Translations under genes and position numbers: made by a program
The notes under the pieces: generated by a model
Told to the model about the DNA's origin: nothing
Database searches by the model: none
The model's input: the letters and a program-made list of their open reading frames with translations, nothing else
Shown: positions 20,501 to 62,676 of the stretch, piece by piece
Numbering within the stretch: the stretch's first letter is position 1
Layout of the letters: each line of letters opens with the position of its first letter
Assembly (NCBI RefSeq): GCF_006345805.1
Contig: NC_043005.1
Coordinates: 15,562,001-15,626,000 of the forward strand
Length of the DNA stretch: 64,000 nt
Source of the DNA: Octopus sinensis
Taxonomy: Eukaryota
Direction of reading: 5' to 3'

Positions 20501-20526
20501 TCATTTGGAGGGAAGTGAGGAACTCT
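20501..20526 (-). CDS. Candidate terminal coding exon 11a (ESSSLPSK*)
   Basis: Strong acceptor ttttctccttctttctttag. In phase 1 it ends at TGA, 2 nt before a gtaagc donor. Confidence 0.45.
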
Positions 20527-23484
20527 CTAAAGAAAGAAGGAGAAAACTGTAAGGGGCCTTCTCCCATCATTCACTTGTATTCTATCACAGAATCATTACA
20601 TGAGTGGACTTTTGACTTGGAAAATTTTCAAATATGATTTTCAGAGTTTATAATGACAAATTATTTTGCTAAATTCTTCATTATTTTCAAAGTAGATTTG
20701 AACAAAGAAGATTATTTGAATAGAAATATTATAAGATTAGGGTTAAACTCTTTCAGACATTTATGGTGCAAATTAAATTTAGACTTGAGTTTTGATAAAA
20801 GATTCCTCCCAGTTATAAAAATCTTGTTTGAGAGGCATTAGCTAATATCCATAGCTAAATCAGCCATGACAGAACGTGACCCAGGCATTAGGTGGATACT
20901 ATTCCAGTGATACTCAGAGAATAATTACAAAGTTTCTGTTCTCCAAATTCACTTGTAGAGTATTGGTTTGTCGTCGGTCCAGGGCTATAGTGAGTTCATC
21001 AGTTCAGACTATGGTGTTGTGCAGCTGGACTGAATGTAATACCATGTGGTTGCAAGATGAAAAATTTACAAAAGATAAAAATAATTACCTATTTTCAGAA
21101 TCAGCTGTGTTACATTGGGTTGGCTTTTCACTAAAAATTAATAAAAAAAGTAATGATAAAAAAAAAATAAAAATTGACAAAAATATCTGAAACACTGAAA
21201 CATTATTATTGAGTTGCTGTTTCTCAGTCATAAACTCCATGAACTTAAATATTCCATCACCTGAACTCTGCAATGGAAAATCCAAATGATTTTATCCTGC
21301 ATTCTGGGACGTTACCAAGGAAGTCACTTCCTAACTGGATTTCTTCTGAGTTGCCTGTTCACTACATTATACACCCAACCATTTTATGTTTGTGTATATG
21401 TGATGAAAATATGTGTGTATGTCTGTCTCTGTATGTGTACATGTGTGCCTTCATTTCTACTGATGTTGATGTCTAACATTTAAAGTACACAAAATGTAAA
21501 CAAGACGTGTTCCCATATACCACATACCTTTTCTTAGTGGTTTAAATTCTATCAACCTCTCATTCTTATCTTTGCTTTCTTCTTTTATTTTGAATTCATA
21601 CTCTGCATAATCATTCTTCAAACGTATCTGAAATGATAGATTTGAAATATTATTTACAGATGCCAGGACCCCTGGACTGGAGATACGTAAAAAGCACTAT
21701 CCGAATCGTGGCCGATGCCAGCGCCGCCTCGACTGGCTTCCATGCCGGTGGCACGTAAAAAGCACCATCCGAATCGTGGCCGAAACCAGTGCCGCCTTGA
21801 CTGGTTTCCGTGCAGGTGGCACGTAAAATGCACCAATCCGACCATGGCCGATGCCAGCCTCGCCTGGCACCAGTGCAGGTGGCATGTAAAAAGCACCCAC
21901 TACACTCACGGAGTGGTTGGCGTTAGGAAGGGCATCCAGCTGTAGAAACATTGCCAGATAAGACTGGAGCCTGGTGCAGCCTTCTGGCTTCCCAGATCCC
22001 CGGTCGAACCGTCCAACCCATGCTAGCATGGAGAACGGACGGTAAACGATGATGATGATGATGATGATGACAACTCAGCTGTTTTGAGTACTGATTCTGA
22101 GTTCCCTCAGTTCTTTGTGAAGGTGTTGATCTCTCTCTATTTCTCTCTACGTTTTGTAGGGGAGAAACATTAAATTCTTTCCATCTCCCACCTCCCACCA
22201 AGTCAATCAATCAATCAAACAACCAATAATATTTATATCACACAGTTCAATATATAGATTCTACTGTCTGACTATTCTCCTGTCCAGAAATATCCATCAA
22301 CATGTGATTAGCATTTTTGATCCTAATTAACTCTGAATGTCAATCTGTAGTAGACACTCGTTTGTGAACTGCTTGAAAATGCACCTCATCACTAGGTACA
22401 CAAACCAGTGGCACAGGATATGACCTGTATCATTGAAATCCATCGATTAGATAAAAAGTCATTGTGTTCTGAACATACCTACCATTTCTTAGTCCCTTTT
22501 TGCCAAATCCTTCTTTGGACAAGGAGTTAAAATACAGAGAACTGTAGATGAGTGCAAGAATTAAGAGAATGTCTCTCCATGCAACACTAATGGTAGAACA
22601 TGGATTTAGTAGTGCAGAGCAATAGAACAGTCAACAATTATACACAGCTCCCACTGCATGCAGTGGTAAGATGTAGCACTTAGGGGTACCTATTTATAGT
22701 AAGGTGGACTAAACTAGTGAGACTTTAACAGCACTGGAGATGAAGTTTTGATTAGTCACGTGAAAAGTGACACTTTGTGAAGGAAGAGTTTACTTTGAAA
22801 CAAGTGACACCTTAATCGTCAATATCATCATCATTATCCACATCACCATCTCCACCACCACCACCACCATCATCATCATCATTATCCACATCACCATCTC
22901 CACCACCACTATCATCATCATCATCATCAGATTGAAGTTTTGGGAGAATAAAGGAGAAAAGAGAGATAAAATTAACAAGATTGTGAGAAAAGACAGCACA
23001 GACTTGAAAGGTAATAGGATGGGTTATTTAGTGGTGGAGGGGCAGGTCAAGGGCTATCCATCATCATAAATATTTTCAGAAAAGATTTTCAAGTTGGCTC
23101 TACTAGTATTTTGAACCCAGCCATTTTGAAATCTCAAATTCACTAACATAAATTACACCATTTGCTTTCTTATCATCATTAGATATCTTAAAATGGGTGA
23201 ATAAAATATCATATTACATCATTGATTCTGATAGGTTTATCCAAAAAATGCAGTTTTAAGCCGGTTATTTCATTATCTTCATATGTCTCCAAATAGAAAT
23301 GGTCAACACAGCCATATCCATGTTCACAGAGATTTTGCCAAACTAAACCTTTAGAGAAGGAAGATAATGTTCCTTGAATTATTTCTACAAAGAAAGCTTG
23401 CTCAAGTTCTTCAGAAGACATAATTATCAGCTGCCAAATTTTACCTGAAATAAAAAAAAAAAATTTAATTACTCAGTATGTGAG

Positions 23485-23518
<34 letters not shown>

Positions 23519-23897
23519 CTCTTCAGTCATTTGACTGTGGTCATGCTGGAGCACTGCCTTTAGTCAAGCAAATTGATCCTAGGACTCATTCTTTGTAAGC
23601 TTAGTACTTATTCTATTGGTCTCTTTTGCTGAACCTCTAAGTTACAGAGACGTAAACACACCATCATCGGTTGTCAAGCGATGTTGGGGAGTCAAACACA
23701 GACACACAAACATATACACAGATACATATATATATACATATATGTGACAGGCATCTTTCAGTTTCCATCCACCAAATCCACTCACAAGGCTCTGGTCGGT
23801 CCGAGGCTATAGTAGAAGATACTTGCCCAAGGTGCTACGCAGTGGGACTGAACACAGAACCATGTGGTTCATAAGCAAGCTACTTACTACACACCCA

Positions 23898-23974
<77 letters not shown>

Positions 23975-26900
23975 TACACTTATATATATACATATATCAT
24001 CATCATCATCATCATCATCGTTTAACGTCCGTTCTCCATGCTAGCATGGGTTGGACGGTTCGACCGGGGATCTGGGAAGCCAGAAGGCTGCACCAGGCTC
24101 CGGTCTTATCTGGCATGTTTCTACAGCTGGATGCCCTTCCTAACGCCAACCACTCCGTGAGTGTAGTGGGTGCTTTGGGGCAAACACCCCCTGTGAAATT
24201 TCAAATACTTCCGATTTCAGTGAAAATAACAACATAACTTCTAGGTAGTAAATAAAGGCAATTTCCAAAATTTCACCATCTTACAATATTATTTGACCCT
24301 ACTAAAGGGGTTTATAACATGGGACAGAGCCCCTTTGAAAGTGCAAATACATCAACTTTTCATGGAAGGTACATAAAATTTAAGTATGTGTTCTTGGAAT
24401 AAGTTAAAACTTCAACAATGCATATTTCATTCTAGACTTTGCAACATAATTTTATGCATTAGAAAAAGAATATTTTAATAAGCAAAACATACTTCGTTTA
24501 CCATATCACGGTCAGTCCAAACACCTGACTCATCAGTTGAGCGTATACCAATACAACGATCAACAGTGACTAGCTTTGTGTCTTGAGAATATATAATTTT
24601 ATAAAAAAGCTGTTTTTTATCCATGTTTGACTTTTGTCATGTTTCACTTACATGTTAGCAAAAAAGATACACACACACACACACACACATATATGATTGG
24701 TTTAGTTGTTCAAAAAAATCTTACGTCCCAGTAGTTTGCATGAATATTTAGAAGCAGCTGGCTTAAATATGTTACCACAACCATATACTTTTCCAGTAAG
24801 TGCATTTGTTATGACAATCTGAAAAATTATGAAACAATACACTTTAAGTTGATTACTTTCATTGTATATTTAAATTAATGCAAACACCTACACTGATATA
24901 AGGGCAATCCTTGTCATTTTGAGCTTCATTTTTATCATCAACTAGCAGAATCGCCCGGCGTTGCTCGGTTTTGTAAGGGAAATAACTATATAAGCATTTT
25001 TAGAGATGTAAAGTATAATAGCCATCTCAATATGGCTAACCACAAAGTTACTGTAGCTTTTTACGTTCTGAGATTTAATAATACATTTTTAGAGAGTTAC
25101 TTCCCTTATATAATAGCAAAAAAATGCATTAAAAATGGAAAAAAAAAGATGGTAATTTTTTTTTTAAATCGTAGACTCATCGTAGACGCGTGCTAATACC
25201 CAGAAGGGCTCGATATGAATCACTACTATGAGATACCCGCTTTTGGTTACACTGCACCGCAAAATGTGGGAGTAGTTAGGAATCTAAATCATAGGAGACA
25301 GACAGCACACAACCTCACTTTTATATATAAAGATATTTCACCAAAAAATTCTGTCGTTTTTATTGCATCGATCATTTTGTTTCTGTGAGATAATGTAATT
25401 CTGTTCCATGTTTAATTAAACTTGTACAAGATAATGATTAAAATTTAAACTGTAAAATAATTATTTGTTAAATATGGTCACATGCAATTATATATTTTTC
25501 AACACTGTTTGATGTGACTCAAGTTATTTATTCTAGCTTGGCTAAGCTTAATGTGCATCAGTAAATGTAATATTTATTGTTATCCGAACAGGGCTGTGAA
25601 AGACGAATATTAGTAACTGATGACAAGCAAGGACACAGAAATGCATGCATCCTACCCCCCGATAAAGTCATTCATAGCCCAATGGGTTTTCACACATTTT
25701 TCTGTGAGGAGGATTTATTCACTGGATTATTTCCATAGTGAAATGTCTTCCCACATCCAAGTGCACCCAAATGTGCTTAATATAGTTCTCCATGATTATA
25801 ATTTATTCAATTTTACATTTAGCAACAAAAATGTACTCCATCCAGTGAGAGATATATATCATTTACTATAGACATGACATAAATTGAAGTTAATATTAGT
25901 TTTATGCAGTGAAAACACAATTATTGATCAGGCTCATATAGAAAACCATGCACTTTCAAGCAACCTTTTGCTCTTTAATATACAACAGGGCTGGTCATTT
26001 TTCGAAAAAAACAAGCAAGTACAGTACTTATATCTAAAAGGGATATGAGAGCTTTCAGCTAAACAAAGCCTGCATCTCTACTCACCTACTAAGTTCAGGA
26101 TGTGACATTTTCACTAAATATAAACATCTGAGCAAATTACTTTTATTCAACTGTGACTACTAAGACCCGGGATGCTCCCAGCACCAGTTCCGCATACCCC
26201 CTACCCATCCAAAGTACCTTGGATCCCGGAACATCTCGCTGTGCTTGAGGAGACCTGTTGAGTCAAGTGCATATACATGAACATCGAACCAAATATCAAT
26301 GGAAACAGTAGTTGTGATACCTGTGCCGGTGACACATAGAAAGCACCATCTGATCGTGGCTGTCGCCAGTGCAGCCTCCACTGGCTTCTGTGCCAGTGGC
26401 ACATAAAAAGCTCCATCCGAACGTGACCGATGCCAACCCCGCCTCGAATGGCTCCTGTGCCGGTGGCACATGAACATCAAGCCAAATATCAATGGAAACA
26501 GTAGTTGTAATACCTGTGCCGGTGACACATATAAAGCACCATCCGAACGTGGCCGTTGCCAGTGCAGCCTCCACTGGCTTCTGTGCCAGTGGCACATAAA
26601 AAGCACCATCCGAACGTGACCGATGCCCACCCCGCCTCAAATGGCTTCTGTGCCGGTGGCACATGAATATCGAACCAAATATCAATGGAAACAGTAGTTG
26701 TGATACCTGTGCCGGTGACACATAAAAAGCACCATCCGAACGTGGCCGTTGCCAGTGCAGCCTCCACTGGCTTCTGTGCCGGTGGCACATAAAAAGCACC
26801 ATCCGAACGTGACCGATGCCAACCCTGCCTCGAATGGCTTCTGTGCCGGTGGCACATGAACATCGAGCCAAATATCAATGGAAACAGTAGTTGGGATACC

Positions 26901-28215
26901 TGTGCTGGTGACACATATAAAGCACCATCCGAACGTGGCCGTTGCCAGTGCAGCCTCCACTGGCTTCTGTGCCGGTGGCACATAAAAAGCACCATCCGAA
27001 CATGACCAATGCCAACCCTGCCTCGAATGGCTTCTGTGCCGGTGGCACATGAATATCGAACCAAATATCAATGGAAACAGTAGTTGTGATACCTGTGCCG
27101 GTGACACATAAAAAGCACCATCCGAACGTGGCCGTCGCCAGTGCAGCTTCCACTGGCTTCTGTGCCGGTGGCACATAAAAAGCACCATCCGAACGTGACC
27201 GATGCCAACCCCGCCTCAAATGGGTTCTGTGCCGGTGGCACATAAAAAGCAACATCCGAACGTGGCCGATGCCAGCACCGCCCCGACTGGCTTCTGTGCC
27301 GGTGGCACATAAAAAGCAACATCCGAACGTGGCCGATGCCAGCACCGCCCCGACTGGCTTCTGTGCCAGTGGCACATAAAAAGCACCAACTGATCGTGGC
27401 CGATGCCAGACCCCTCTGGCACCTGTGCAGGTGGCACGTAAAAAGCACCCACTACACTCGCGGAGTGGTTGGCGTTAGGAAGGGCATCCAGCTGTAGAAA
27501 CACTGCCAGCGCGGAAAATGGACGTTAAACGATGATGATGATGATGATGATGAAAACACCACCCTCACCATATTAAGCATCCTTGTTCAATTAATTTACA
27601 CCATCCAAATATATTCTCGTTTGAAGACACTGAACAGACACAACTCTTAATTTTCTTCTGGTTTTTTCCCATTCCACTTTTTCTTTTTCACTTCCTCTCA
27701 TCATCTTTCATGTTTTATCAAATACCAGCCTCCTTTCTCATCACTTCTAAAAAGTGCAGCCATATTGTATGTTTGAGTCTGAAAGATTGCTTGAAAATAC
27801 ATGGCACAGTATACACGCTTGTCTGACAATCATGTTTTCACAGCATGAAACTAATAGTTACTTGAATTTAAAAGCTGTGTATATTAAATGGTATATATAA
27901 GCTTATGTACATATACATACATGCATACATATACATATATGTGTGAGTATGTATAGATAGATATATACATTATACATGTATGTGTATATATATGTGTGTG
28001 TATGTATATATATATATATATATGTGATAGTTGCCATGATAGTTCGTTAGCCACTACACACATTTTCTTCTCTCCTTGTTTTTTCTATGTCCCTTTCTGT
28101 AGAAGAGCATAGGCTCAAAACGTAAAAGACTCTTTCTATTCCTGAGCATTATACTAATACATCTGTTTGTTTTGTACACCACCTGTCTTCGTCTTTTGTT
28201 TTTTTCATAAACTCT

Positions 28216-28258
<43 letters not shown>

Positions 28259-29465: not shown

Positions 29466-29500
<35 letters not shown>

Positions 29501-32090: not shown

Positions 32091-35000
32091 CATATATATA
32101 CACACACACACATCATCATCATCATCATCATCATCATTTAGCGTCCGTTTTCCATGCTAGCATGGGTTGGACGGTTCAACTGGGGTCTGGGGAGCCCGAA
32201 GGCTGCACCAGGCCAGTCAGATCTGGCAGTGTTTCTACAGCTGGATGCCCTTCCTAACGCCAACCACTCCGAGAGTGTAGTGGGTGATTTTATGTGCCAC
32301 CGACACAGGTGCCAGACGAGGCTGGCGAACGGCCACGCTCGGATGGTGTTTTTATGTGCCACCGACACAGGTGCCAGATGAGGCTGGCGGACGGCCACGA
32401 TCGGATGGTGTTTGTTACGTCCCCAAAGCACGGAGGCCAGTCTATGCGGTACTGGCTATGGCCACGTTCGGATGATTTTCTTGTGTGCCACCGGCACTGG
32501 TACCACCGGCACTGGTACCACAAAGATACAAATTCCATTGATGTTCATCTATTTTGATTTGTTTTGATTTGATTTGATTTTCACTTGCCTCAACAGGTCT
32601 TCACAAGTGTCACAAGAAGGAAGGTATGCACAGGTGGACTGACTACGTCCCAGGTAGGGGCCACGGGTTATGGCCTGACTAGTCTTGCCGGGTCTTCGGA
32701 TGGTGTTTTTATGTGCCACCGACACAGGTGCCAGATGAGGCTGGCGAACGGCCACGATCGGATGGTGTTTGTTGCGTGCCCACAGCACAGAGGCCAGTCG
32801 ATGCGGTACTGGCTACGGCCACGTTCGGATGGTTTTCTTGTGTGCCACCGGCACTGGTACCACAAAGATACAAATTCCATTGATGTTCATCTATTTTGAT
32901 CTGATTTGATTTGATTTTCACTTGCCTCAACAGGTCTTCACAGGTCTTCACAAGTGTCACAAGAAGGAAGGAAGGTATGCACAGGTGGACTGACTACGTC
33001 CCAAGTAGGGGCCACGGGTTATGGCCTGACTAGTCTTGCCGGGTCTTCGGTTGGTGTTTTTATGTGCCACCGACACAGGTGCCAGATGAGGCTGGCGGAC
33101 GGCCACGATCGGATGGTGTTTGTTATGTGCCCACATCACAGAGGCCAGTCGATGCGGTACTGGCTACGGCCACGTTCGGATGGTTTTCTTGTGTGCCACC
33201 GGTACTGGTACCACAAAGATACAAATTCTTTATATATATATATATAACCCATGCTAGCATGGAAAGCGGATGTTAAACGATGATGATGATGATGATGATG
33301 ATGGTGATATATATCTATATATATATGTATGTACATATATGAACAGAGAAATACAAATGTACGTTTGCATACACACACATATGTGTGCAAGTTCATACAC
33401 AGTGACATACAGAGATAACTCCATTTAATGTGAGAAACCTCTGACTGGTTCACTTGCTAGAAATGCCAAATCTCTTTTAAATCACATCCTACTGTCTTAG
33501 AGAAGAAGGACACACTGAATAAAGCCTTTGGTTGCATGCATCTGAGAAACTAACATGATGGTCATGACTGGAATGTCTTTCTTTCTTTAGCCAATCAAGC
33601 AAGCCCAACCAGGACTTCAACAATGACAAAAAAATCGAACAGAGAAGATAAAAAATACAGAATTCTTACTTGGAATATGTCAAAAGCCTCATGAGGGTAA
33701 TTGAAGTATACAAGAACCTCATTCATTCTTAAATTTCCAATAATGGCAAATTCAGCAAATGTCGGGATATAAGCTAACTTTTTTAATCTTAGCTGATGTA
33801 AAGAATGTATTCCACTGCCATGCACTACAAGAAGTACAGTTAGTACTACTCTATCTCTTATTAGTCTGGATCGTGAGGTTAATTCTACTCTCCACATAGA
33901 ATCTAAACAAGAAAGAAGAAAATAATTTTTTTAAAAAAACAATCAAAAAGATGATAGTGTAGTTGTGATACATTAACCCTTTGTTACCAACCCGGCTGAA
34001 ACCGGCTCTGGCTCTGTTGTACAAATGTCTTGTTTTCTTAAGGTTTCAATTAAAATCTTCCACCAAACCTTAGTCACAATTTATGTTCCTAATACAAGCT
34101 GAATGATAACTAAGTTATTTTACTAAATTCTTTGTTATATTTAAAATTAATTGAAAAAACACAGAACATCTCAAAATAAATACAGTAAAGAAAGGGTTAA
34201 CAAATGAAACGTGCTGAAAGAAAAGAAGAAACATTGGAATTACTTGACATTTTAAGATCCAAGCTATTCCTCAAAGGATGGTGGCTGAAATATTTGTTAG
34301 AATATTTTTGTTGAAATACAATGTCTTGGTTTCAGTTAATTTCGAGAATGATGAAGCATTTATTAAATAACTTTGGAATTTTAATGAAAGATTTTTCATT
34401 TCAACCACTTTAAAACAAAGAATTGATATTAGGGAAGTAGGGTCCATCTTTGGCAGGTTGTCACCAAAATGGTTCAGAAGTAAATGAATGGTAGCTATTA
34501 ATATTTGTAATCATATTAAATTCAATGATTTAAATAATTAGTAGGAGGAAGAATTATCATTAATAATATTTGTTATGAACATTAAACACTTTTGATATAT
34601 ATGTAACAAATAATTTATTGTATGTTTGTATGCAAATCCAGCAAAATGTGAATTTGTAAAAGGTGAGAGCTGCAATATCTCATATAAATAAAATCATAAT
34701 TGCCTTTTAATAGTGAGAATAATTTCTTAGAGAGAAAGTGGAAGAGTAAAACTGATATTTAATGAAACAATATTCATCCAGGATCTAAAAATACAAGGTG
34801 TCCCAATGGTCTCCGTGGAGGGCTTAATTCTAAGGCTTTTATAAGACTGCTAAAACATCATCATCATCATGAATATCTAACATCCACTGTCTATGCTGGC
34901 ATGGGTGGACAGTTTGACCAGGGTTGGTAAGCTGGAAGGCTGCACCAGACTCCAGTCTGATTTGGCATGGTTTTCTGCAGCTGGATGCTTTTCCTAACAC

Positions 35001-47800: not shown

Positions 47801-50800
47801 ATATAGGAGAGTAGGCATTGATCGCAGGATGTCTTAGGTGTCATTTTGGCAGTTTGTTGGAATATCGTTTATTGGTTCATGGATAGTTTTTTGGATCGTT
47901 AAGTTGTTGTTACCCTGCTTCGTTATATGCTTTATTATTACTCCACAATTATAATGTAAAAATATATCGTCATAACAATTGGCAATACAACAATTTCATT
48001 TAAGAATTTTTGCATATGGCATTCAATGTATTACCCCTAAATATATTATATTCAAATTCATGTAATTATTTCATTTGACTTATCTCTCATGAATCACTTC
48101 TTTTTTTCATCTAATTCTATGAAATATATTGGCCAAAATTATCGGTAACTGTTTTCCTATCTGTAAAAACGTTTCTTATTTGGAATAACTTTACAGATGT
48201 TTGTCTTTTCTTATCGCTGACAAAACAATTGTGAATTGAACCACTAAATGTAGAATAATGTGTCTTTCTTGGGGATTGAAAGGCAACAATAAGATTTGAA
48301 CTCATAATATGAACCTTTCAAGTTGAATTCATTAATATTACAGTCACATGCTCCCTTGTGCATTTTGTAGGGTGTAGGGGTTGTACTAAGGAAAACAATT
48401 CCTTGAGGAATTAAAGGAGAAGAAAAAAAACAGTAAAAGAACAAACAATAAAGAACAGTTCTGAGGCAAAATCTTACAATTTGATAATGTCATTTTGGCT
48501 CCTGGACATGGTGCTTCGCACAGAACACCATACGCTTCTTCAAGATCTTTATTTTCAATAACTATCTACAATAGAAGATCAGTGCAGGAATTTAAAATAG
48601 TTTCATGATGATAATGATGATGGTGGTACTGATGGTGGTTGTAGTGGTGATGATGATGGTGGAGGTGATGAGGATGGTAGTGGTAGTGTTGGAAGTGGTG
48701 GTGGAGATGGTGGTAATGGTTGTGTTGGTGACGATGATGTTCATGATGAGAGTGATGATGATGATGATGATGATGGGGATGATAATGCTGATGGTAATGA
48801 TGATCATGGTGACAATAAAACATTTGTAGTGAACGGCCAGTACAGACCAGTGTGGAATAGTGTCCTCACACACACACCCACACACATATTAAACCAGCTT
48901 CTTTCAGTTTCTGCCTCCGAAATCCACTCACAAAAAAATCTTGGTCAGCCAAGGGGTTTAATAGAAAATACTTGCCTAAGGTGCCACATTGAGAGATGAA
49001 TTGAAAACCATATGAGCCCACTTTTTAAGCATACACCAATCCCTGTGCCTTTATACACACACACACACACACATACACACACACTGGCTCTCCATGCTTG
49101 TGAGATTAATGTGCAAGTGGCCGAGTATTCCACAGATATACATACTCTTAACATAGTTGTCAGGGAGATTCAGTGTGACACAGAATATGAAAAGGATGGT
49201 CCCTTTCAAATACAGGCACTACTCAATTTTTGCCAACTGAGTAGACTGGAGCAATGTGAAATAAAGTGTCTTGCTCAAGGACTGAATGTGCCACCAGGAA
49301 TCGAACTCATAACCTTATGACAGTGAGCTGAATATTCTAACCACTAGCCACCTGCCTTTACTAGACACACATACACAGGGAGAATGCAGAGCAAAATGTT
49401 ATAAACTGTTTCATGTTGAAAGACCTTTGGACAAACTTTACACCTAATTCCACAGCCATTCTCATATGCCCCTCCAGATCAAACTTTGAGAGATTAATCA
49501 ATAATAGACAGATATTTACACATGCTTAAAGAAATGATTAAATGGGATGTATAAACAAATTCTTTGGGGATCCTGAAATGGTTTAATGATATTTAGAATA
49601 AGAAAACTACTAGATTCTTTCAAAAAAATATCACTAACTACTATGCATCCATCGGCCATGTCCAATGAAATTGTAAGAAGGATTATACTGGGATGAAGCA
49701 TTATTCACTATCTGTAATTGTAGCAAAAATAAAGTTGAACAGTATAAGGAAAATCTTTTGCAATTTTAAAATAGATCTGGATTTTCCATCTCTGTAGAGA
49801 CAGATCATAGTAAAGTAAAAAATTTTTTAGATATTACCCTTGACCTTATTTCTGAACTGCATCAACCATTTCACAAACCCAGTGACAACCTTAAGTACAT
49901 AAGCCACAACTCAAATCATCCAAAATGCATTATAAACTCTATAATTAAGGCAGTCTCAATTAGAATTTCTAAGCTTTTAACTAGGAAAAAAATTTTTAAA
50001 CAACATGGGAGATATAACCTAACTTCAGCTGAAGTCGGTTACCAAGAAGAAATTAAATACATCCCAAATAGTAGTGATTCAGTCAAAGATAATAATGTTA
50101 ACAATGGACAAATTATGATTCTGGTGACTCACAGGTGGTGTAGTTAGGACAAAGGACACAGAAACACCCTTAACCAACAGAAAGAAAGATAAGTGAAACA
50201 CACATAAAAGTAAGAGACAATCGAGTAACATTAATTCAAGTAAATTGACTGCTAAATCTTCACAACCTCCCAAATATGGTAGGTATAATGTTAATCACCA
50301 GCAAGAGGTGGAAGATAGGAAGCGTGGTGTGCAATAATCGCCCATATAAGATTTATTTTTAATACAAGCTGACTAGCTCATGACAAAAGCATGAAGAGGA
50401 ATAGTGAAGAATGTAGTAATTCTAAGAAACAGAGTGGTAGATTAAAGCAAGTAGTCTGATATAATGCACCATTGACATTGCAAATCACCACCAGTATCCT
50501 GAGACAATTCTTCGTGGCCTTAGAAAAGCAGTTCCCACAACACAGCTTACACTGGTTATGCCTATGAAGTTCCTAAGGCAGCTGCAGGAGAAATATGTAG
50601 CCAAAGATAAAATCTTTGTACTTGGCTTTTGTTGACTTAGGGAAAGCCTTTGACAGGGTCCCCTGATCCCTCGTCAGATGGTCAATATGGAAACTAGGGA
50701 TAGTTTCCAATGAATGGCTGGTGAGAGCTGTACAAACCATGTACAGGGATGCTGTCAGTAAGGTGAGGGTTGGCAATGAGTACAGTGAAGATTTCAGGGT

Positions 50801-54926: not shown

Positions 54927-54958
<32 letters not shown>

Positions 54959-56186
54959 TTATTCTAATTTACCTGGAACTCCGTAGATGGACGAATGTCA
55001 ATAGAATGTGGTCTTGTGTCGTTGACCAAGTCAATTTCAGTTGTGAAGCAGTTGTCCTCGTTTGGACATGTTATGTTTGTATATGTATCCCCGTTCAAAA
55101 TAAGGTGAACTGAAGACTTATGTGCCTCAGTGTAACAAATTTCCACATTCCATTTTCTGGCCTGGGTATCTGACAAATAATTTGAAAAAATGAAAAATGT
55201 TTATCAATTATTTTCAAAACATCTTTAAAATATTTATACTGTGAATAGTTATTCTATTCTTCTCCTCTCTAGTAATTTATTACCAATTTCAGCCAGACTG
55301 TGGCCATGCTGGGGCACCACCCTAGTTATGCCAAAAAAACTAGTGTATAATATTGGAATTTTTTTTTGAAAAAAACACCAAAATCTGAATAATTATTGTC
55401 AGTTGGAACTCTTCAAACATTTACTTTCAAGAAACTATGTTTTTTTTCTTTATATATGTTTTGTTCATGAATAAATCTGTTTGCCTTATTTTTTAAATCA
55501 TTTTTCTCTACAACAACCACTCTAGTTTCATGACAGAATGCCTGATGCTAATGCAGTGGAAAGAATTACTTTATCATTATGGCCAGTATTTCTCTGCTTT
55601 TCTCTTTTACATTTCAATATCCATTCCATCAATGCTAACATGAAAGAAGGAAAAACAGAGTAGAAGCCAGGAAGCTCACAACAAAACCATAAGCAATTTC
55701 TGAAATGGAACATCATTATCATCATTTCAATATCTACCTTTCCCATGCTTGCATGGGTCAGGTGGAATTTTTTGAGGCAGATTTTCTACAACTGGATGCT
55801 ATTCCTGTCACCAACTCTCACCTTTTTCCATAAAACTGGTAACAAGGGACACTGCCTTTATGATGGTGATGCTTGTTTACAGTCATCACGAGAGGTCACA
55901 ACAAAGGCAGCAAACACACATGCACATAGCTTTTATGTTTTACTTGTTTCAGTCACTAGACTGTGGCCATGCTGGGGCACCACCTTGAAGAATTTCTAAT
56001 CGAACGAATTAACCCAAATACTTTTATTTTCCTTTAAGCCTGCTACTTATTCTATTGATCTCTTTGCCAAACTGCTAAGTTATGGGGACACAAACACAGC
56101 AACACTGGTTGCCAAGCTTGTGGGGTGGGGGGAGACAAACAGACAAAAAGACACACACACACAGATACATACATATGTGTTTGTCA

Positions 56187-56226
<40 letters not shown>

Positions 56227-56435
56227 TCTCTTTACTCTTTTACTTGTTTCAGTCATTTGACTGCGGCCATGCTGGAGCACCGCCTTTAGTCGAGCAAATC
56301 GACCCTGGGACTTATTCTTTGTAAGCCCAGTACTTATTCTATCGGTCTCTTTTGCCGAACCGCTAAGTGATGGGGACATAAACACACCAGCATCTGTTGT
56401 CAAACAATGCTAGGGGCACAAACACAGACACACAA

Positions 56436-56477
<42 letters not shown>

Positions 56478-58666
56478 GACAGGCTTCTTTCAGTTTCCGT
56501 CTACCAAATCCACTCACAAGGCGTTTGTCGGCCCGGGGCTATAGCAGAAGACACTTGCCCAAGATGCCAGGCAGTGGGACTGAACCCGGAACCATGTGGT
56601 TGGTTAGCAAGCTACTTACCACACAGCCACTCCTGTGCCTATATATATATATACTAGCAGAATTGCCCGGCGTTGCTCGGGGCTGAATTGCTTGAAAGTA
56701 CTGTTAATGATTGCACTGAATTATGATGATTATTCAGGCAAATATTGATATAAGCTTACGGTGGGAGATAAGGACTTAACGATCAAACGTGTGCCATTGC
56801 ATTGTTTTGGGGGAACCAAATTTCTGATGAGCATTATAGGGGCACCAACTTTAAATTTGAGAAAGTGTGGTGGTAGTCCGGGGTGCTCAAAGGAATTGAG
56901 TACCTCTATTGGATAGTTGATGACGTCCTCTGGGTCAGGAGTTGTATCGATAGACTGATATACATAGACTTCCCCAGGAATGAGTTTTAGCATTTTATCA
57001 TTAATATGGTGAACAGTTTTATTCCTCGGGGCCAGTATAGCCTTTTTGCCAATCCAATCCATATTCTGATAATTAGCTTGTAGATCTGGGAACACTGCAT
57101 CTCTGAGATCAGAAGGCGTCTTAGCAATGGTACAAATGGAATCGATGGCAATATTACCATTTTCATCCCTGGTATTTTGCCTTCGCCAAGTGCAAGGAGG
57201 GTGTGAGGAAATGCTGCTGATGTGATATTACGTCGCATATGAGCACACATATTGGTGTGAAGTTTGAGAGTTACTTCCATTTATTAAAAAAAATATGCAT
57301 TAAAATGGAAAAAAATGATGGTAAATTATTTGTAAAATCATAGACTCATCGTAGACGCGCGCTAATACCCAGGAGGACTCGATAGGAATCACGACTATAA
57401 GATACCCGGTTTTGGTTAAACTGCATCGCAAAATGTGGGAGTAGTTAGGAATCTAAATCGGAGTAGACAGACACACAACCTTTCTTTTATATATAAATAT
57501 TTTCGTCCTAAAAAACTTTGTATGGATTGAATGGTTACCTCTATGGAAATATATACACGCACATTATACATACATGTGTGTATAGATGAATATATAAATA
57601 CATTTAAATATCTATATACTGTTTTGGGCGATCTTTCTGTTTCTTAGAGATAACTTTAGATCTTATTTTCGTCCTAAAAAACTTTGTATGGAGTGAATGG
57701 TTACCTCTATTGAAATATATACACACACGTTATACATACATGTGTGCATAGATGAATATATAAATATATTTATATATCTATATACACTTTTGGGCGATCT
57801 TTGTGCTACTTAGAGATAACTTTAGATCTTATTTTCGTCCTAAATAACTTTGTATGGAGTGAATGGTTACGTCTATGGAAATATATACACACACATTATA
57901 CATACATCTGTGTATAGATGAATATATAAATACATTTAAATATCTATATACACTTTTGGGCGATCTTTCTGCTACTTGGATATAGGTCTTATATTCGTCC
58001 TAAAAAACTTTCCAGTCACACACTCACGCACACGCACACACACACACACACGCACCCTCATACACACACACGCGCACACACACACACTCACACACACGCA
58101 CGTTAGCTTACAATTTTATTTATATATTTGCGTGTCTATGTGTGTAAAGAGGAAGTGGGAGGCAGAGTGAAAGAGTCACTCACTTCAGAAAGTGAATTAC
58201 TTTAATTTTATTCGTTGCACACTGTGTGTGTGCGTTTGCGTGTGCTGTATCCCACACTAAGAGAAGCATTTGACTCATACACCACAATGTGAGTTTTCTC
58301 TAAATTTTGCTTAATTGGGGTTGAAATTTTAAAAAGTGGACCTGGCACGACCCGATGCATTCTACTCTTAAAAATGCTAGGTAAATTGTAATTGAAGAAA
58401 TCCTATATTGTAGATTTCTATAAGATACAAAGGGAGGCAGATAAAATCTGCCTTTTATAATAAGAGATATCTCTTATTATAAAAGGCAGATTTTATCTGC
58501 CTCCCTTTGTCTCTTATAGAAATCTACAATATAGGATTTCTTCAATTACAATTTACCTAGCGGGTCGTGCCAGGTCAAGTTTTTCAAATTTCACCCCCAA
58601 TTAAGCAAAATTTCGAGAAAACCCACATTGTGGTGTGTAAGTGAAGTGCTTTTCTTAGTGTGGGCT

Positions 58667-58705
<39 letters not shown>

Positions 58706-59117
58706 AGCGAAATGCTTCACTCATGCTATCACCCTAATTTCTCCTCCTTTCTCTTTGCAAGTGTGCAACGATTAAAGTGAAAGTATTTATATAAAACGAG
58801 AGAAGTGTACATTAAACCACTACTCAAAAAAAAAAACACAGCAAACAGAAACAAATAAATACATAACGATTTACTCCTCACACAATTTCTTCAATTAGAG
58901 TTTACCTATGATTTTTCAAAGTACTTCCATTCGGTCATGGCATACAAAATTTCTTTCAATTTCACCCCCATTTCAGAAAAAATTCAGAAAACTAAATATT
59001 TTACCATTTCACTCACTTCAAAGCCTTTACTCTGCATATTACTCCCACTTCCTATTTACACACATAGACACGCAAATATATAAATAAAATTGTAAGCTAA
59101 CGTGTGTGTGTGTGTGT

Positions 59118-59157
<40 letters not shown>

Positions 59158-59162
59158 GTGTG

Positions 59163-59212
<50 letters not shown>

Positions 59213-62200
59213 TGTGTGACAGGGATGAGCCAGTCAGACTGGTCATCCTTTTTGCTAGAAGATCACCTATGGTCTTTATGCTACACCACTGGTTTTCAGT
59301 TCATATTAATCAAATTCATATTCACAACAAGAAGGACTATTCATTATAATACATCAGTTCCACACATTTACCCTGGTTCCATTTCGGACAACTGCACAAA
59401 CATTTGCCATTTCACACATGTATGTAAACAAATTCCTTTCTTAAAAATTTCAATTCATTTTCTTTTTCAGTTCATACAAAGTTTTTCAGGACGAATATAA
59501 GATCTAAAGTATATCCAAGTAGCAGAAATATCGCCCAAAAGTGTATATAGATATTTAAATGTATTTATATATTCATCTATACACACATGTATGTATAATG
59601 TGTGTGTATATATTTCCATAGAGGTAACCATTCACTCCATACAAAGTTATTTAGGACGAATATAAGATCTAAAGTATATCCAAGTAGCAGAAATATCGCC
59701 CAAAAGTGTATATAGATATTTAAATGTATTTATATATTCATCTATACACAGATGTATGTATAATGTGTGTGTATATATTTCCATAGACGTAACCATTCAC
59801 TCCGCACAAAGTTTTTTAGGACGAAAATAAGATCTAAAGTTATCTCTAAGAAACAGAAAGATCGCCCAAAAGTGTATATAGATATTTAAATGTATTTATA
59901 TATTCATCTATACACACATGTATGTATAATGTGCGTGTATATATTTCCATAGAGGTAACCATTCAATCCATACAAAGTTTTTTAGAACGAAAATCTTTAT
60001 ATATAAAAGAAAGGTTGTGTGTCTGTCTACTCCGATTTAGATTCCTAACTACTCCCACATTTTGCGATGCAGTTTAACCAAAACCGGGTATCTTATAGTC
60101 GTGATTCATATCGAGCCCTCCTGGGTATTAGCGCGCGTCTACGATGAGTCTACGATTTTACAAATAATTTACCATCATTTTTTTCCATTTTAATGCATTT
60201 TTTAAAATAAAGGGTAGTAACTCTCAAACTTCACACCAATATGCGTGCTCATATGCGACGTAATATCACATCAGCAGCATTTCCTCACACCCTCCTTGCA
60301 CTTGGCGAAGGCAAAATACCAGGGGATGAAAATGGTAATATTGCCATCGATTCCATTTGTACCATTGTTAAGACGCCTTCTGATCTCAGAGATGCAGTGT
60401 TCCCAGATCTACAAGCTAATTATCAGAATATGGATTGGATTGGCAAAAAGGCTATACTGGCCCCGAGGAATAAAACTGTTCACCATATTAATGATAAAAT
60501 GCTAAAACTCATTCCTGGGGAAGTCTATGTATATCAGTCTATCGATACAACTCCTGACCCAGAGGACGTCATCAACTATCCAATAGAGGTACTCAATTCC
60601 TTTGAGCACCCCGGACTACCACCACACTTTCTCAAACTTAAAGTTGGTGCCCCTATAATGCTCATCAGAAATTTGGTTCCCCCAAAACAATGCAATGGCA
60701 CACGTTTGATCGTTAAGTCCTTATCTCCCACCGTACACTTATATCAATATTTGCCTGAATAATCATCATAATTCAGTGCAATCATTAACAGTACTTTCAA
60801 GCAATTCAGCCCCGAGCAACGCCGGGCAATTCTGCTAGTATATAATAAAAATTTGTATGTTTATCAAGATTCCTAATGCGAAATCGTGTTGAAACAGATA
60901 TTATTCTATTTCGAGACTATATATTTTCTCTTCATTTGTTTATTATCGTTCTTATTTCAACAGACATGAGTTGAAATACAAATAGTAATAAATGAGTGAA
61001 AAACAAATATTTAGTATGTTTATTTGGAATTTTTAAAAAATGACCATCCTGAAATCTTTATATATAAAAGTCAAGTTGTGTGTCTGTCTCCTACGATTTA
61101 GATTCCTAACTACTCCCACATTTTGCGGTGCAGTTTAACCAAAACCGGGTATCTTATAGTCGTGATTCATATCGAGCCCTTCTGGGTATTAGCGCACGTC
61201 TACCATGAGTCTACGATTTAAAAAAAAAATTTACCATCAATTTTCCCCCATTTTTAATGCATTTTTTTCTATTATATAAGGGAAGTAACTCTCTAAAAAT
61301 GTATTATTAAATCTCAGAACATAAAAGCTACAGTAACACCCCCCTTTGTGGTTAGCCATATTGAGATGGCTATTATACTTTACATCTCTAAAATGCTTAT
61401 ATAGTTATTTCCCTTACAAACCCGAGCAACGCCGGGCGATACTGCTAGTACAATATAAATATATTCAGATATATATATACTCACAAGGCACTGGTCAGCC
61501 TGAAGCTATAGGTGCCACATAGTGAGACTGAACCTGGAACCATATGGTTGGGAAGCAAGCTTCTTACTACACAGACACACCTGTGCATATAAATATGTGT
61601 GTGTAGAAATTTATAATAAATTATTAATTATAATTGAGGGTACACAAAGTACCAGTGTTACTAGAAATAAGAGTTGAAAAATACTAAATCTCTGAGAGAG
61701 ATTCATGTAGTAGCAGCATGATAAAATGATAGTATGTTGTCAACTTAATGTGACAGTCCCATGAAAGGGAAGAATGCTACTGTTGTGTAGCCCTAGGAAA
61801 TACTGTTTCCTGTTGGGCTTGACACATTTCCTGTTCTGTCATCATAGAACCTCATAAAGAATGGTGCAAACAAGCTCCCTTTAAATGGGAAAACCAAGTT
61901 CAAATGACTGCAGTACGGGAATTCTGCAATAGCATTAACCCTTTAGTGTTTAAACCAGCCAAATCCGGCCCAATATATTCTACATGTTTATATTCAAACT
62001 GGCGATATCTAGCCTCTCACTCCTAACCTACAATGTCATTCTGAAAATAAACAATCACATCATTGAAACCTCAAAGCTATAAGATAATGCATGATTAATT
62101 CAAAACAATTTGAGTGAAAAAGTATTACATTTAACAGAGTATTCTGAACACTAAAGGGTTAAACTTTGAGCTACCATATTTCTGTTGAAATGCACTGCCA

Positions 62201-62676
62201 TTGTCTATTAATTTTGGAAGTTGTGAAGAATTCATTTAAATAACTTTGTCATTATGAAGCAAATGTTTGGAACATGACATGAGATTTTGATGGCAGGTTT
62301 TACTTCAGATGAATTTAAAACAGAGAATGTCTATGATTCAACCAGGAGTGACGTTACTATGTGGTTTGGGATCAAAAAGATTAAACCAAGTGATAGATAA
62401 GGTCAACCACCCAAGAACAGGAACAGAAATGAACTCTACAACAGGCTACCACAGAATCCCCAACTATCCAGTTCCACACTTTAGATTTTAGCTGACCTGA
62501 GACTGTTGTACAAGACCCTAATCCAGGGTACCATACAGTAGAAACTGACCTGAAAACAAACCTCTTCATTATACACAGCCATACATAATGATTGCAGAAA
62601 TAAATAAATAAGAGAACTTACAAAAGAAATGAGGTAAAACAAAGAATAAAATACTGCAATAGGAAAGAACCAGCAT
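20501..62676 (-). CDS. Multi-exon gene: signal peptide + four tandem PLAT/LH2-like repeats (455 aa if exon 20526-20501 is terminal)
   Basis: Join of 62676-62622, 55169-54973, 48565-48478, 43846-43641, 42060-41961, 33902-33670, 24818-24725, 23444-23218, 21627-21528, 21130-21089, 20526-20501 = 1368 nt. All introns are GT-AG, all phases are compatible, and there is no internal stop. The PLAT assignment is from motif pattern only. Confidence 0.8.
21089..21130 (-). CDS. Coding exon 10: linker ([14 protein letters not shown])
   Basis: Acceptor ttttttattaatttttag, donor ATAG|gtaatt, 42 nt, symmetric phase 1. Confidence 0.65.
21528..21627 (-). CDS. Coding exon 9: repeat 4, second part ([12 protein letters not shown]...FKPLRK)
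   Basis: Acceptor tctatcatttcag, donor AAAG|gtatgt, 100 nt, phase 0 to 1. Confidence 0.85.
21660..22070 (+). mobile_element. RTE LINE 3' end with (GAT)n tail
   Basis: Hairpin units plus conserved terminal segment. Confidence 0.85.
23218..23444 (-). CDS. Coding exon 8: repeat 4, first part (KIWQLIIMS...GCVDHFYLE...KPIRIND)
   Basis: Acceptor poly-T atttcag, donor GAT|gtaata, 227 nt, phase 1 to 0. Confidence 0.85.
23515..23895 (-). mobile_element. CORE-like SINE (family A)
   Basis: Reverse complement of the family A consensus seen elsewhere in the window. Confidence 0.85.
23998..24176 (-). mobile_element. RTE LINE 3' end, 5'-truncated
   Basis: (CAT)n tail; near-identical inverted copy of 21893-22070. 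Confidence 0.85.
24725..24818 (-). CDS. Coding exon 7: repeat 3, second part ([14 protein letters not shown]...SCKLLG)
   Basis: Acceptor ataatttttcag, donor GGAC|gtaaga, 94 nt, phase 0 to 1. Confidence 0.85.
24942..25333 (-). mobile_element. Non-autonomous Helitron (~392 bp)
   Basis: 5'-TC start, subterminal hairpin ccgagcaacgccggg, 3'-CTAG, inserted between A and T. Confidence 0.9.
26160..27552 (+). mobile_element. RTE LINE 3' end containing a 193-bp higher-order tandem array
   Basis: aatatcaatggaaacagtagttg recurs at 193-bp spacing, five times; (GAT)n tail. Confidence 0.9.
28025..28220 (+). mobile_element. Penelope-type pseudo-LTR fragment
   Basis: ctgtagaagagcataggctcaaaacgt hammerhead-like core in the same architecture as 16741. 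Confidence 0.5.
28360..29280 (+). mobile_element. RTE LINE ORF2 end plus 3' UTR
   Basis: RQLCWYGHV and GRGKPRK motifs, UTR units, atgatga tail. Confidence 0.85.
29530..29935 (+). mobile_element. RTE RT fragment with internal C4HC3 (PHD-like) finger
   Basis: KTKVL...CSIC...CTQC..*THKRC...CGKC...VVDSFHYLG. Confidence 0.8.
30775..31300 (-). mobile_element. RTE apurinic-endonuclease-domain fragment
   Basis: [15 protein letters not shown] and QHRLVVSD motifs. Confidence 0.85.
32110..33230 (-). mobile_element. RTE 3' end with an internal ~350-bp segment in about three tandem copies
   Basis: gtgtttttatgtgccaccgacacagg block recurs near 32345, 32702 and 33053. Confidence 0.85.
33670..33902 (-). 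CDS. Coding exon 6: repeat 3, first part (SMWRVELTS...EAFDIFQ)
   Basis: Acceptor tcttctttcttgtttag, donor CAA|gtaaga, 233 nt, phase 1 to 0. Confidence 0.85.
33977..34196. mobile_element. piggyBac-type MITE
   Basis: TTAA flanks, TIR ccctttgttac / gtaaagaaaggg; partial inverted copy at 36660-36862. Confidence 0.8.
34860..35990 (-). mobile_element. RTE LINE 3' portion (ORF2 end plus UTR)
   Basis: (CAT)n tail at 34855; reverse complement of the RT C-terminal motifs. Confidence 0.8.
36090..36655 (+). mobile_element. RTE LINE 3' end
   Basis: Same terminal segment and tail as the other copies. Confidence 0.75.
37114..37322 (+). mobile_element. SINE family B head with an alternative 3' tail
   Basis: ggcggtgagctggcagaaacgttagc head; the tail differs from the 8906 and 9430 copies. 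Confidence 0.8.
37530..39300 (+). mobile_element. CR1-group LINE RT remnant interrupted by a SINE
   Basis: [30 protein letters not shown] and [12 protein letters not shown] motifs. Confidence 0.8.
38756..38953 (-). mobile_element. SINE family B with 19-bp target-site duplication
   Basis: tatatactattatatattt at 38737-38755 and 38954-38972. Confidence 0.9.
39415..40155 (+). mobile_element. RTE 3' end with nine ~61-bp tandem units
   Basis: aaaagcaccatccgtt recurs nine times; (GAT)n tail followed by (TA)n. Confidence 0.9.
40335..41290 (-). mobile_element. RTE LINE 3' portion
   Basis: (CAT)n tail and reverse-complement ORF2 C-terminus. Confidence 0.8.
41961..42060 (-). CDS. Coding exon 5: repeat 2, second part ([14 protein letters not shown]...ECKSIN)
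   Basis: Acceptor tctttttgttactttaatttag, donor AATG|gtaagt, 100 nt, phase 0 to 1. Confidence 0.85.
43641..43846 (-). CDS. Coding exon 4: repeat 2, first part ([11 protein letters not shown]...KFQLGTD)
   Basis: Acceptor ctcttactttctag, donor GAT|gtaagt, 206 nt, phase 1 to 0. Confidence 0.85.
44097..44612 (+). mobile_element. Internally deleted mariner element, same family as 19367-20206
   Basis: TIR gagaaggtacccaaaag / cttttgggt; LPPYSPDLA motif. Confidence 0.8.
45420..45900 (-). mobile_element. Penelope-like GIY-YIG fragment
   Basis: [18 protein letters not shown]...YIGQT and IWRLKE...INWSI...CCLC motifs. Confidence 0.8.
46090..46930 (-). mobile_element. Decayed RTE-1-like LINE RT remnant
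   Basis: NY..ICLLSH.YK.FT and [12 protein letters not shown]...PR..KRP.G motifs across frames. Confidence 0.6.
48478..48565 (-). CDS. Coding exon 3: repeat 1, second part ([29 protein letters not shown])
   Basis: Acceptor tcttctattgtag, donor AATT|gtaaga, 88 nt, phase 0 to 1. Confidence 0.8.
48600..48830. repeat. (GAT/GGT)n trinucleotide low-complexity tract
   Basis: Directly visible; lies just upstream of the exon 3 acceptor. Confidence 0.9.
50570..52145 (+). mobile_element. RTE LINE RT-to-3'-end remnant
   Basis: FVDL.KAFDRVP, decayed PHD-like insert, HYLGDQ and atgatga tail. Confidence 0.85.
52400..52760 (-). mobile_element. Penelope-like GIY-YIG fragment, same family as 8310-8660
   Basis: [32 protein letters not shown]. 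Confidence 0.7.
53154..54730 (+). mobile_element. Ty3/Gypsy LTR retrotransposon remnant (5' LTR, PBS, gag-protease)
   Basis: TG..CA LTR-like segment 53154-53337, PBS-like tggcgatgagga, gag motifs TFKAYYRRY and [10 protein letters not shown], decayed zinc knuckle, LDT protease motif. Confidence 0.75.
54973..55169 (-). CDS. Coding exon 2: repeat 1, first part ([11 protein letters not shown]...IRPSTEFQ)
   Basis: Acceptor ttatttgtcag, donor CAG|gtaaat, 197 nt, phase 1 to 0, open frame. Confidence 0.85.
56227..56639 (-). mobile_element. CORE-like SINE (family A), full length
   Basis: Head ggcacaggagtggctgtgtggtaag, B box ggttccgggttcagtccc, internal microsatellite, (aaagagt)n tail. Confidence 0.9.
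56654..58467 (-). mobile_element. Composite Helitron, left arm (PIF1 helicase fragment 56730-57240)
   Basis: 5'-TC at 58467, (CA)n, 3 x 166-bp repeat, inner Helitron start near 57499, ILAPRN and [12 protein letters not shown] helicase motifs, hairpin + CTAG at 56654. Confidence 0.85.
57500..57995. repeat. 166-bp tandem repeat x3 (mirrored at 59468-59993)
   Basis: ttttcgtcc recurs at 57500, 57666 and 57832. Confidence 0.9.
58470..60838 (+). mobile_element. Composite Helitron, right arm (PIF1 helicase fragment 60241-60762)
   Basis: 5'-TC at 58470, inner TC start at 59994, PIF1 motifs, cccgagcaacgccggg hairpin, CTAG|T at 60838. Confidence 0.9.
61055..61448 (+). mobile_element. Non-autonomous Helitron (~394 bp)
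   Basis: A|TC start, hairpin, CTAG|T end; sister of 24942-25333. Confidence 0.9.
61939..62158. mobile_element. piggyBac-type MITE
   Basis: TTAA flanks; TIR ccctttagtgtt / aacactaaaggg. Confidence 0.8.
62622..62676 (-). CDS. Coding exon 1: start codon and hydrophobic signal-peptide core [18 protein letters not shown]
   Basis: GCCATG context, in-frame TAA upstream, and no ATG in the 157 nt back to a strong acceptor (tttttctttacag, exon start 62833). Donor TTTT|gtaagt, phase 1. Splicing to exon 2 gives ...HFFYTQA/RKW, a plausible signal-peptidase site. Confidence 0.7.

Follow-up and report, generated by a model that had tools for sequence, protein, structure and literature searches.

The window analyzed here is the 64,000-nucleotide stretch C9:15562001-15626000 (contig NC_043005.1) of the Octopus sinensis genome; the assembly searched (GCF_006345805.1) comprises 2.72 Gb in 13,516 contigs. 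The window consists of AT-rich, repeat-laden eukaryotic DNA and contains, on its minus strand, a multi-exon gene for a candidate surface receptor. The gene corresponds to RefSeq locus LOC118764738, the 469-amino-acid product of which (XP_036361598.1) is labelled "uncharacterized." Ten exons, running from 62676 to 21089, were rebuilt from the DNA, and the nine introns between them are all of the GT-AG type, with gtaag/gtaat-type donors, pyrimidine-rich acceptors, and phases that are all compatible. Together with a further exon at 19319-19256, they yield a product identical to XP_036361598.1 at 469 of 469 residues, an exact match that places the gene model far beyond chance. A sequence-only reading of this DNA had proposed a hidden 42-kb gene with canonical splice sites. 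The ten in-frame exons of that proposal are real and, together with the exon at 19319-19256, reproduce the RefSeq protein; the gene is not hidden, since it was annotated already. All of the peptides quoted in that reading were found on the minus strand where it had placed them, including the start ATG of MLVLSY at 62676, RKWNVEIC at 55158-55135, and repeat peptides at 33840-33811, 24818-24777 (repeat 3), and 23313-23245 (repeat 4). Its ten exons were taken to be the ten rebuilt here, and its eleventh to be the segment 20526-20501, since its count of seven glycosylation sequons includes N439.

All of the exons lie on the minus strand. Exon 1 (62622-62676) carries the start codon and the putative signal peptide and ends in phase 1 at the donor gtaagt, with a tyrosine codon split across the junction; its product is identical to the N-terminus of XP_036361598.1. 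The four repeats that follow share one plan, in which an A exon (phase 1 to 0) is joined to a B exon (phase 0 to 1), so that each A+B pair forms a phase 1-1 module. Repeat 1 is encoded by exon 2 (A1, 54973-55169), which includes the sequences TQA and STEFQ and covers the first five predicted strands, and by exon 3 (B1, 48478-48565), which covers the last strands. Repeat 2 is encoded by exon 4 (A2, 43641-43846; strands 1 to 5, to KFQLGTD), which matches the Octopus vulgaris ortholog at an E value of 4e-40, and exon 5 (B2, 41961-42060; strands 6 to 8, to YHECKSIN), which contains C196 and C211. Repeat 3 is encoded by exon 6 (A3, 33670-33902; strands 1 to 5, to AFDIFQ), which contains the most variable stretch in comparison with a paralog, and exon 7 (B3, 24725-24818; strands 6 to 8, to KYSCKLLG), which contains C307 and C320. 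Repeat 4 is encoded by exon 8 (A4, 23218-23444; strands 1 to 5, to KPIRIND) and exon 9 (B4, 21528-21627; strands 6 to 8). Exon 10 (21089-21130), which runs from phase 1 to phase 1, encodes a juxtamembrane stalk with the sequon N439.

The protein has exon-by-exon matches to its O. vulgaris ortholog and to paralogs, and single exons match paralog proteins at E values from 1e-9 to 1e-46. Among the 5.8 billion proteins searched, eight matched, all from Octopus. The O. vulgaris ortholog (models CAI9728741 and CAI9728742) is 98% identical, with a complete reading frame that includes a cytoplasmic tail. The RefSeq records of LOC118764738 and its twin LOC118764737, and the O. vulgaris models, are named only "uncharacterized" or "hypothetical."

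The marks of an extracellular protein reported in the sequence-only reading (a putative signal peptide, sequons, and conserved cysteines in four tandem divergent modules of ~100 amino acids) were supported. Inspection of the sequence reveals a hydrophobic N-terminal stretch followed by T-Q-A|R, which agrees with the -3/-1 rule and is shared across the family, and the AlphaFold2 (AF2) model of a homolog has a low-confidence helix at residues 2 to 19. These features suggest a cleavable-looking signal peptide. The seven N-x-S/T sequons are N50, N68, N113, N149, N154, N215, and N439, and repeats 1 to 4 contain 5, 2, 2, and 2 cysteines, respectively. Two cysteine pairs, C196/C211 in repeat 2 and C307/C320 in repeat 3, occupy the final two strands of their repeats; family members share them without exception or with at least 90% conservation, which fits extracellular disulfides.

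C-terminus and twin copy of the locus

The gene spans positions 62676 to 10942 (~51.7 kb) and does not end at 20501, where the sequence-only reading had closed it. Exon 11 (19252-19319) encodes the predicted transmembrane helix VVGLFSLFTVLLFIIVIIVSI, followed by an arginine, with a splice donor after position 19256. The Kyte-Doolittle hydropathy of this segment averages 3.2 over 19 residues (residues 447 to 465), and the AF2 model of the O. vulgaris ortholog has a helix at residues 356 to 394. A hydrophobic helix of ~21 residues is therefore present after the ectodomain and is followed by a basic residue, a feature that is conserved in the paralogs. The only Pfam matches at E values of ≤10 were weak ones, to families of single-pass membrane proteins or transmembrane segments. 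The RefSeq model reads through the donor of the transmembrane exon into a TAA at 19254-19252 and consequently has no tail. The O. vulgaris ortholog and the paralogs have a tail exon, and the stalk, transmembrane, and tail exons are conserved in proteins of O. vulgaris, Octopus bimaculoides, O. sinensis, and Argonauta hians. These features argue for a type I single-pass membrane protein rather than a secreted one.

In the window, the tail corresponds to exon 12 (10942-11189, with its stop codon at 10944-10942), which encodes ~2.5 copies of a 14-residue unit, followed by SIPMQDD and a terminal TTEIYY. Read from its normal acceptor, the exon as assembled gives RYQI and then a stop codon, the frame being broken by two missing single bases within 11150-11190. 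When these two bases are supplied from the twin copy of the locus described below, the tail is identical to the O. vulgaris tail at 82 of 83 residues. An alternative acceptor 7 bases downstream (exon start at 11182) was considered as a means of keeping the tail in frame and rejected, since the twin shows that the normal acceptor works with the two bases. The true product is likely a protein of ~550 amino acids, with the transmembrane helix and the 83-residue tail exon.

The twin covers the entire locus and is placed on the same scaffold at a distance of 0.9 Mb, at C9:14.67-14.71 Mb. RefSeq names the two copies separately, as LOC118764737 (the twin) and LOC118764738 (the window copy). Over three 3.2-kb stretches, introns included and mostly intronic, the copies are 99.2 to 99.6% identical. 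Over 3.3 kb around the tail exon, they differ by 64 gap openings and 12 mismatches, and within the tail exon itself by five 1-base indels and no substitutions. Two of the five indel bases are missing in the window and the three others are missing in the twin, so that neither copy keeps the tail exon in frame. Such an excess of indels over mismatches is the signature of long-read assembly error and not of decay. Probably a single locus, or a pair of haplotypes, entered the assembly twice, each time with long-read indel errors. Because the copies differ in this exon by indels only, and because the gap-filled reading agrees so closely with O. vulgaris, the tail is probably intact in the real gene. 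The analysis thus corrects the C-terminus of the RefSeq model and points to assembly indels and to a probable false duplication within this part of the O. sinensis assembly.

The twin RefSeq model, XP_036361597.1, uses an internal donor (24778) in exon B3, by which 18 residues are lost, among them the conserved second cysteine of repeat 3, and its end is a read-through of the A4 donor (INDDVI). This form may represent an alternative isoform or an artefact of the gene model.

Repeat modules and predicted fold

Two AF2 runs were made on family members. The first, on the O. vulgaris ortholog with 7 sequences, gave a mean predicted local distance difference test score (pLDDT) of 48, and only repeat 4 was confidently folded. 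The second, on homolog P0003 from O. bimaculoides (55% identity to the window protein, with the same exon plan), used 18 family sequences and reached a pLDDT of 81 and a predicted template modeling score of 0.74. The P0003 model contains four all-beta domains, of which repeats 2 to 4 are eight-stranded (5+3) and repeat 1 is seven-stranded (5+2). Each A exon accounts for five strands, and each B exon accounts for three (two in repeat 1). The intron between the A and B exons has the same position in every one of the four repeats, coinciding with the residue that opens strand 6 (I-x-[IVL]-x-N). Profile comparison of the repeats with hhalign aligned them roughly in register, with repeats 1 and 2 giving a P value of 0.007 over 74 columns and all other pairs giving P values of ≥0.02. 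The shared phases, intron position, and strand pattern point to internal duplication, and the best account of the four modules, as modeled, is duplication of one phase 1-1 exon pair. In the paralogs P0005 (O. sinensis LOC115217897) and P0006 (O. bimaculoides LOC106873081), repeat 2 and a B1-like end are duplicated in tandem to give a fifth module, which indicates that module duplication continues.

The sequence-only reading had described the modules as four PLAT-like domains, and this description holds in part. At the level of fold, a Foldseek search of the PDB with the first model placed pancreatic lipases and lipoxygenases on top, with a probability of 1.0 and E values of 0.005 to 0.05, over 116 to 127 aligned columns and with a root mean square deviation (rmsd) of 4.4 to 6.6 Å; C2 domains followed at probabilities of 0.1 to 0.6. 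The aligned parts of these lipases and lipoxygenases are their PLAT domains. Because only repeat 4 is confidently folded in the first model, the matches were assigned to that repeat. With the second model, the compact matches at a probability of 1.0 were lipase PLAT domains only, including that of lipoprotein lipase, and across both models the PLAT matches span 116 to 131 columns at an rmsd of 4.4 to 6.6 Å. The folding and structure comparison that had been suggested as a check thus returned beta-sandwiches, with the PLAT domains of lipases and lipoxygenases as the best single-domain matches, and at least repeat 4 is predicted to be PLAT/LH2-like by fold. The second model also gave nominally better E values in long multi-domain alignments to PirB, ferlins, GH101, and binary-toxin B components, which were discounted as evidence of homology because their rmsd exceeded 20 Å. 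Against the viral structures of BFVD, Foldseek found only low-probability matches to multi-sandwich phage tail proteins.

At the level of sequence, PLAT membership could not be upheld. The HMMER search against PF01477 proposed in the sequence-only reading gave no match for the whole protein, for each repeat, for 14 repeat-4 sequences, or for 18 family members, even at E values of ≤10, and apart from the weak transmembrane-type matches mentioned above, the same set of queries matched no other Pfam domain at that threshold. A six-frame PF01477 scan of the whole genome identified 11 true PLAT exons, none of which is located at the window locus or in the paralog clusters. When each repeat was compared by hhalign with a profile of seven octopus PLAT domains, the probability was at most 1.1%, with P values of 0.05 to 0.31. 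The GTDA and WL motifs are absent from the repeats. When PDB sequences were searched, the family profile and the repeat-4 profile both yielded chance matches only, and the latter matched no PLAT chain. No repeat is therefore detectably PLAT by sequence, and the likeness in fold may reflect either ancestry or convergence. The implied novelty of an extracellular PLAT fold was also too strong a claim, since the C-terminal domains of secreted lipases, which gave the best structural matches, lie outside the cell as well.

One family member, P0045 (O. bimaculoides LOC106873066, A0A0L8ID31), is named "Vitellogenin domain-containing protein" in UniRef. At E values of ≤10, it matched neither a vitellogenin nor a lipid-transport domain in Pfam, and the name looks like an automatic false positive.

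Family distribution and divergence

Searched with HMMER, the family profile matched 28 entries among 1.84 billion representative proteins, and a second profile search against 5.8 billion proteins yielded 17. The named matches come only from O. sinensis, O. vulgaris, O. bimaculoides, and Argonauta hians, and apart from the one UniRef label mentioned above, all are called "uncharacterized" or "hypothetical." The lineage specificity suggested in the sequence-only reading is thus supported by the confinement of family matches to Octopus and Argonauta, and the family has no recognised Pfam domain. The protein belongs to a multigene family that appears to be restricted to Octopodiformes, having been found in Octopus and Argonauta only. 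Literature searches with the locus identifiers and accessions, and for octopus PLAT domains and taxonomically restricted octopus genes, found nothing on the family. The family and its architecture are therefore undescribed in the literature searched; the gene is on record as a RefSeq locus without a name.

The O. sinensis genome contains at least 15 family loci and ~16 repeat-4 A exons. They are clustered on C9 at 14.67-14.78 and 15.54-15.62 Mb and on C12 at 43.5, 49.7, 51.6-51.8, and 52.2-52.4 Mb, with others on C26 and on small contigs. Divergence was estimated against a neighboring paralog (LOC118764774-like) over the three large A exons (651 sites). The synonymous divergence (dS) was 0.114 and the non-synonymous divergence (dN) was 0.163, giving a dN/dS ratio of 1.43. 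In exon A3 the ratio reached 2.5, with changes concentrated in strands 2 and 3 of repeat 3. Scaffold residues, among them the W, C, and KLAY(I/L)P(T/I)F positions, are preserved between the paralogs. Strong purifying selection is excluded by these values.

Repeat-4-like and tail-like fragments with 48 to 71% identity, some of them interrupted by stops, occur at C9:15542823-15543094 and C9:15555196-15555467, 7 to 19 kb before the window. They probably represent a decayed neighboring paralog.

Candidate function and alternative readings

LOC118764738 is interpreted, with moderate confidence, as encoding a lineage-specific cell-surface recognition and signaling receptor, a membrane glycoprotein with four sandwich modules. 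The array of sandwiches would be displayed outside the cell, where it would bind a putative ligand. This ligand is probably variable (microbial, or self/non-self), since the non-synonymous divergence of the ectodomain is about equal to the synonymous divergence and the genes are clustered. The predicted fold suggests a membrane or lipid surface as a candidate ligand.

The cytoplasmic tail is rich in Ser, Thr, Pro, and Gln. Tails of the paralogs commonly have a membrane-proximal G-x-TST-x-Q box, and among the Octopus and Argonauta paralogs, at least 6 have [DE][IV]Y.N, 4 have Y..MQ, 4 have YEE[LF]/YEDL, which is C-terminal, and 3 have ELYTQP. The acidic [DE][IV]Y-x-N motif occurs in both Octopus and Argonauta, and some tails contain ELYTQPIK repeats. 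Phosphorylated YxN motifs are of the type bound by the Grb2 SH2 domain, pYxxM motifs are of the phosphoinositide 3-kinase (PI3K) p85 type, and pYEE[IL] motifs are of the Src-family type. Signaling in the family may accordingly proceed through tyrosine phosphorylation of the tail, as suggested by the Grb2-, PI3K p85-, and Src-SH2-type motifs in the paralogs. The window gene has a triplicated TST-PQ box, a serine in place of the YxxM tyrosine (SIPMQ), and a tail that ends in EIYY. The loss of the YxxM tyrosine and the EIYY end suggest that this copy may be a weak-signaling or co-receptor-like member. A more specific version of this interpretation, in which the family consists of clustered, diversifying octopod and argonaut receptors built from arrays of extracellular PLAT-derived sandwiches instead of Ig or LRR domains, signaling through pYxN, YxxM, and YEEL-type tail motifs and possibly chemotactile, is offered tentatively and must be considered rather doubtful.

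Several observations weigh against the receptor interpretation. The signaling motifs are found in paralogs and are largely missing from this copy, the RefSeq model of LOC118764738 ends right after the transmembrane helix, and the assembled window sequence does not keep the tail in frame. The excess of the dN/dS ratio over 1 (~75.5 non-synonymous versus 14.5 synonymous changes) is not significant, and relaxed constraint would also account for a ratio near 1. The structure was predicted for an O. bimaculoides homolog with 55% identity, from only 18 sequences, and the sequence similarity between repeats is weak (best hhalign P value, 0.007). The E values of the PLAT matches in Foldseek are modest (0.005 to 0.04), and the output for the second model does not specify the matching repeat.

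Three other explanations were weighed against a membrane receptor. The sequence-only reading had ended the gene in an eleventh exon at 20526-20501, which would encode ESSSLPSK and a stop codon (20503-20501), and had therefore proposed a secreted product. Such a soluble four-PLAT-like protein, as the main product or as an isoform joined to the stalk, is spliceable: a good pyrimidine tract precedes the acceptor at 20527, the frame is right, and the segment lies upstream of the transmembrane exon, so that the spliceosome meets it first. Soluble isoforms are also common in receptor families. However, an open exon of 26 bases behind an AG is easily found by chance, and ESSSLPSK was found in no homolog and no annotation among RefSeq, O. 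vulgaris, and the full-length paralogs compared. The homologs all use the transmembrane exon at 19319-19256, with a conserved K/Q-I-V-[IV]-G junction between stalk and transmembrane helix, which makes a secreted product very unlikely. It is also unlikely, though less so, that this copy is a decaying duplicate, a pseudogene, or an assembly duplicate whose frames are open because the duplication is very recent. That explanation draws on the near-identical twin, on the tail exon that is out of frame in both copies, on the truncation of both RefSeq models, on a dN/dS ratio of ~1.4 against the next paralog, and on the missing tail tyrosine motifs. It is opposed by the integrity of all eleven exons and their splice sites, by the complete frame, tail included, of the 98%-identical O. 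vulgaris ortholog, by the retention of structural residues (W and the C pairs), and by tail-region differences that are almost all single-base indels.

The third explanation concerns the modules rather than the gene. They may be generic beta-sandwiches (Ig-, FN3-, or C2-like, or lineage-born) with a convergent likeness to PLAT, in which case the protein would serve adhesion or recognition and be unconnected with lipid or membrane binding. The absence of a PLAT sequence signal at any level and Foldseek E values that never fall below 0.005 are consistent with this, as are the presence of C2 domains and immunoglobulin (Ig) receptors (PirB, KIR) in the match lists and the cysteine pairs and sequons, which are typical of adhesion modules. 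On the other hand, PLAT is the only single-domain class matched at a probability of 1.0, and it leads the ranking in the model where repeat 4 alone is well folded. C2 domains reach probabilities of only 0.1 to 0.6, the Ig matches are long multi-domain alignments with an rmsd of >17 Å, and no Ig, FN3, or C2 domain was matched in Pfam at E values of ≤10. A generic sandwich is a real possibility, although not the favored one.

Comparison with known systems helps to place the receptor candidate. Like the octopus modules as predicted, the PLAT/LH2 domains at the C-terminus of pancreatic and lipoprotein lipases, at the N-terminus of lipoxygenases, and in the repeats of LOXHD1 and polycystin-1 are eight-stranded sandwiches of ~110 residues. 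The octopus modules also have the alternating hydrophobic strand pattern noted in the sequence-only reading, and LOXHD1 has PLAT domains in tandem arrays. In contrast to these domains, the octopus modules are predicted to be extracellular, glycosylated, cysteine-paired, and anchored by a transmembrane helix, and they have no sequence relation to them. The likeness to vertebrate KIR, LILR, and PirB receptors, and to CD28-type YxxM/YxN tails, lies in the type I topology, the string of sandwich domains, the clustering of genes with variable domain number, the dN/dS ratio of ~1 or above in the ectodomain, and the occurrence of members with either long, motif-bearing tails or degenerate ones. However, the octopus domains are not Ig domains (no Ig or FN3 Pfam match at E values of ≤10) and share no common ancestry with them. 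The consensus of the immunoreceptor tyrosine-based inhibitory motif ([SIVL]xYxx[IVL]) is not conserved, and the short-tailed member lacks a charged transmembrane residue. By analogy, the octopus family may function like clustered immune-type receptors, but it lies outside the Ig superfamily and should not be filed as KIR/LILR-type.

The family is a candidate for a cephalopod surface receptor, a field in which the roles of lineage-restricted genes and the repertoire of immune and surface receptors are poorly charted. An "uncharacterized protein" entry becomes a defined family with a putative signal peptide, four or five exon-pair modules, a predicted transmembrane helix, and a motif-bearing tail. 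If the modules are PLAT-derived, a fold used for binding lipids or membranes would have been recruited, unusually, into the ectodomain of a receptor, which would point to membranes or lipids as ligands. If the novel-receptor interpretation is true, the family would constitute a structurally new class of receptors for immunity or self/non-self recognition in invertebrates.

The remainder of the window contains several repetitive elements. Intron 1 contains two near-identical, inverted fragments of a Pif1-helicase 2B domain (Helitron-like), at 56730-57227 on the minus strand and 60211-60762 on the plus strand. Tandem arrays with a unit of 165 to 166 bp are located at 57498-58011 and 59466-59991, one on the inner side of each helicase fragment, and fragments and arrays together make up a palindrome-like structure of ~4 kb. 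Satellite-like arrays in introns 5 and 6, at 26275-27449 (193-bp unit), 32339-33228 (351 bp), and 39414-39986 (62/123 bp), give long spurious open frames with a recurring GAFYVPPAQ and look like one repeat family. Downstream of the gene, a mariner-type transposase fragment is present on the plus strand at 5763-6173 (Pfam Transposase_1, E value of 1e-25).

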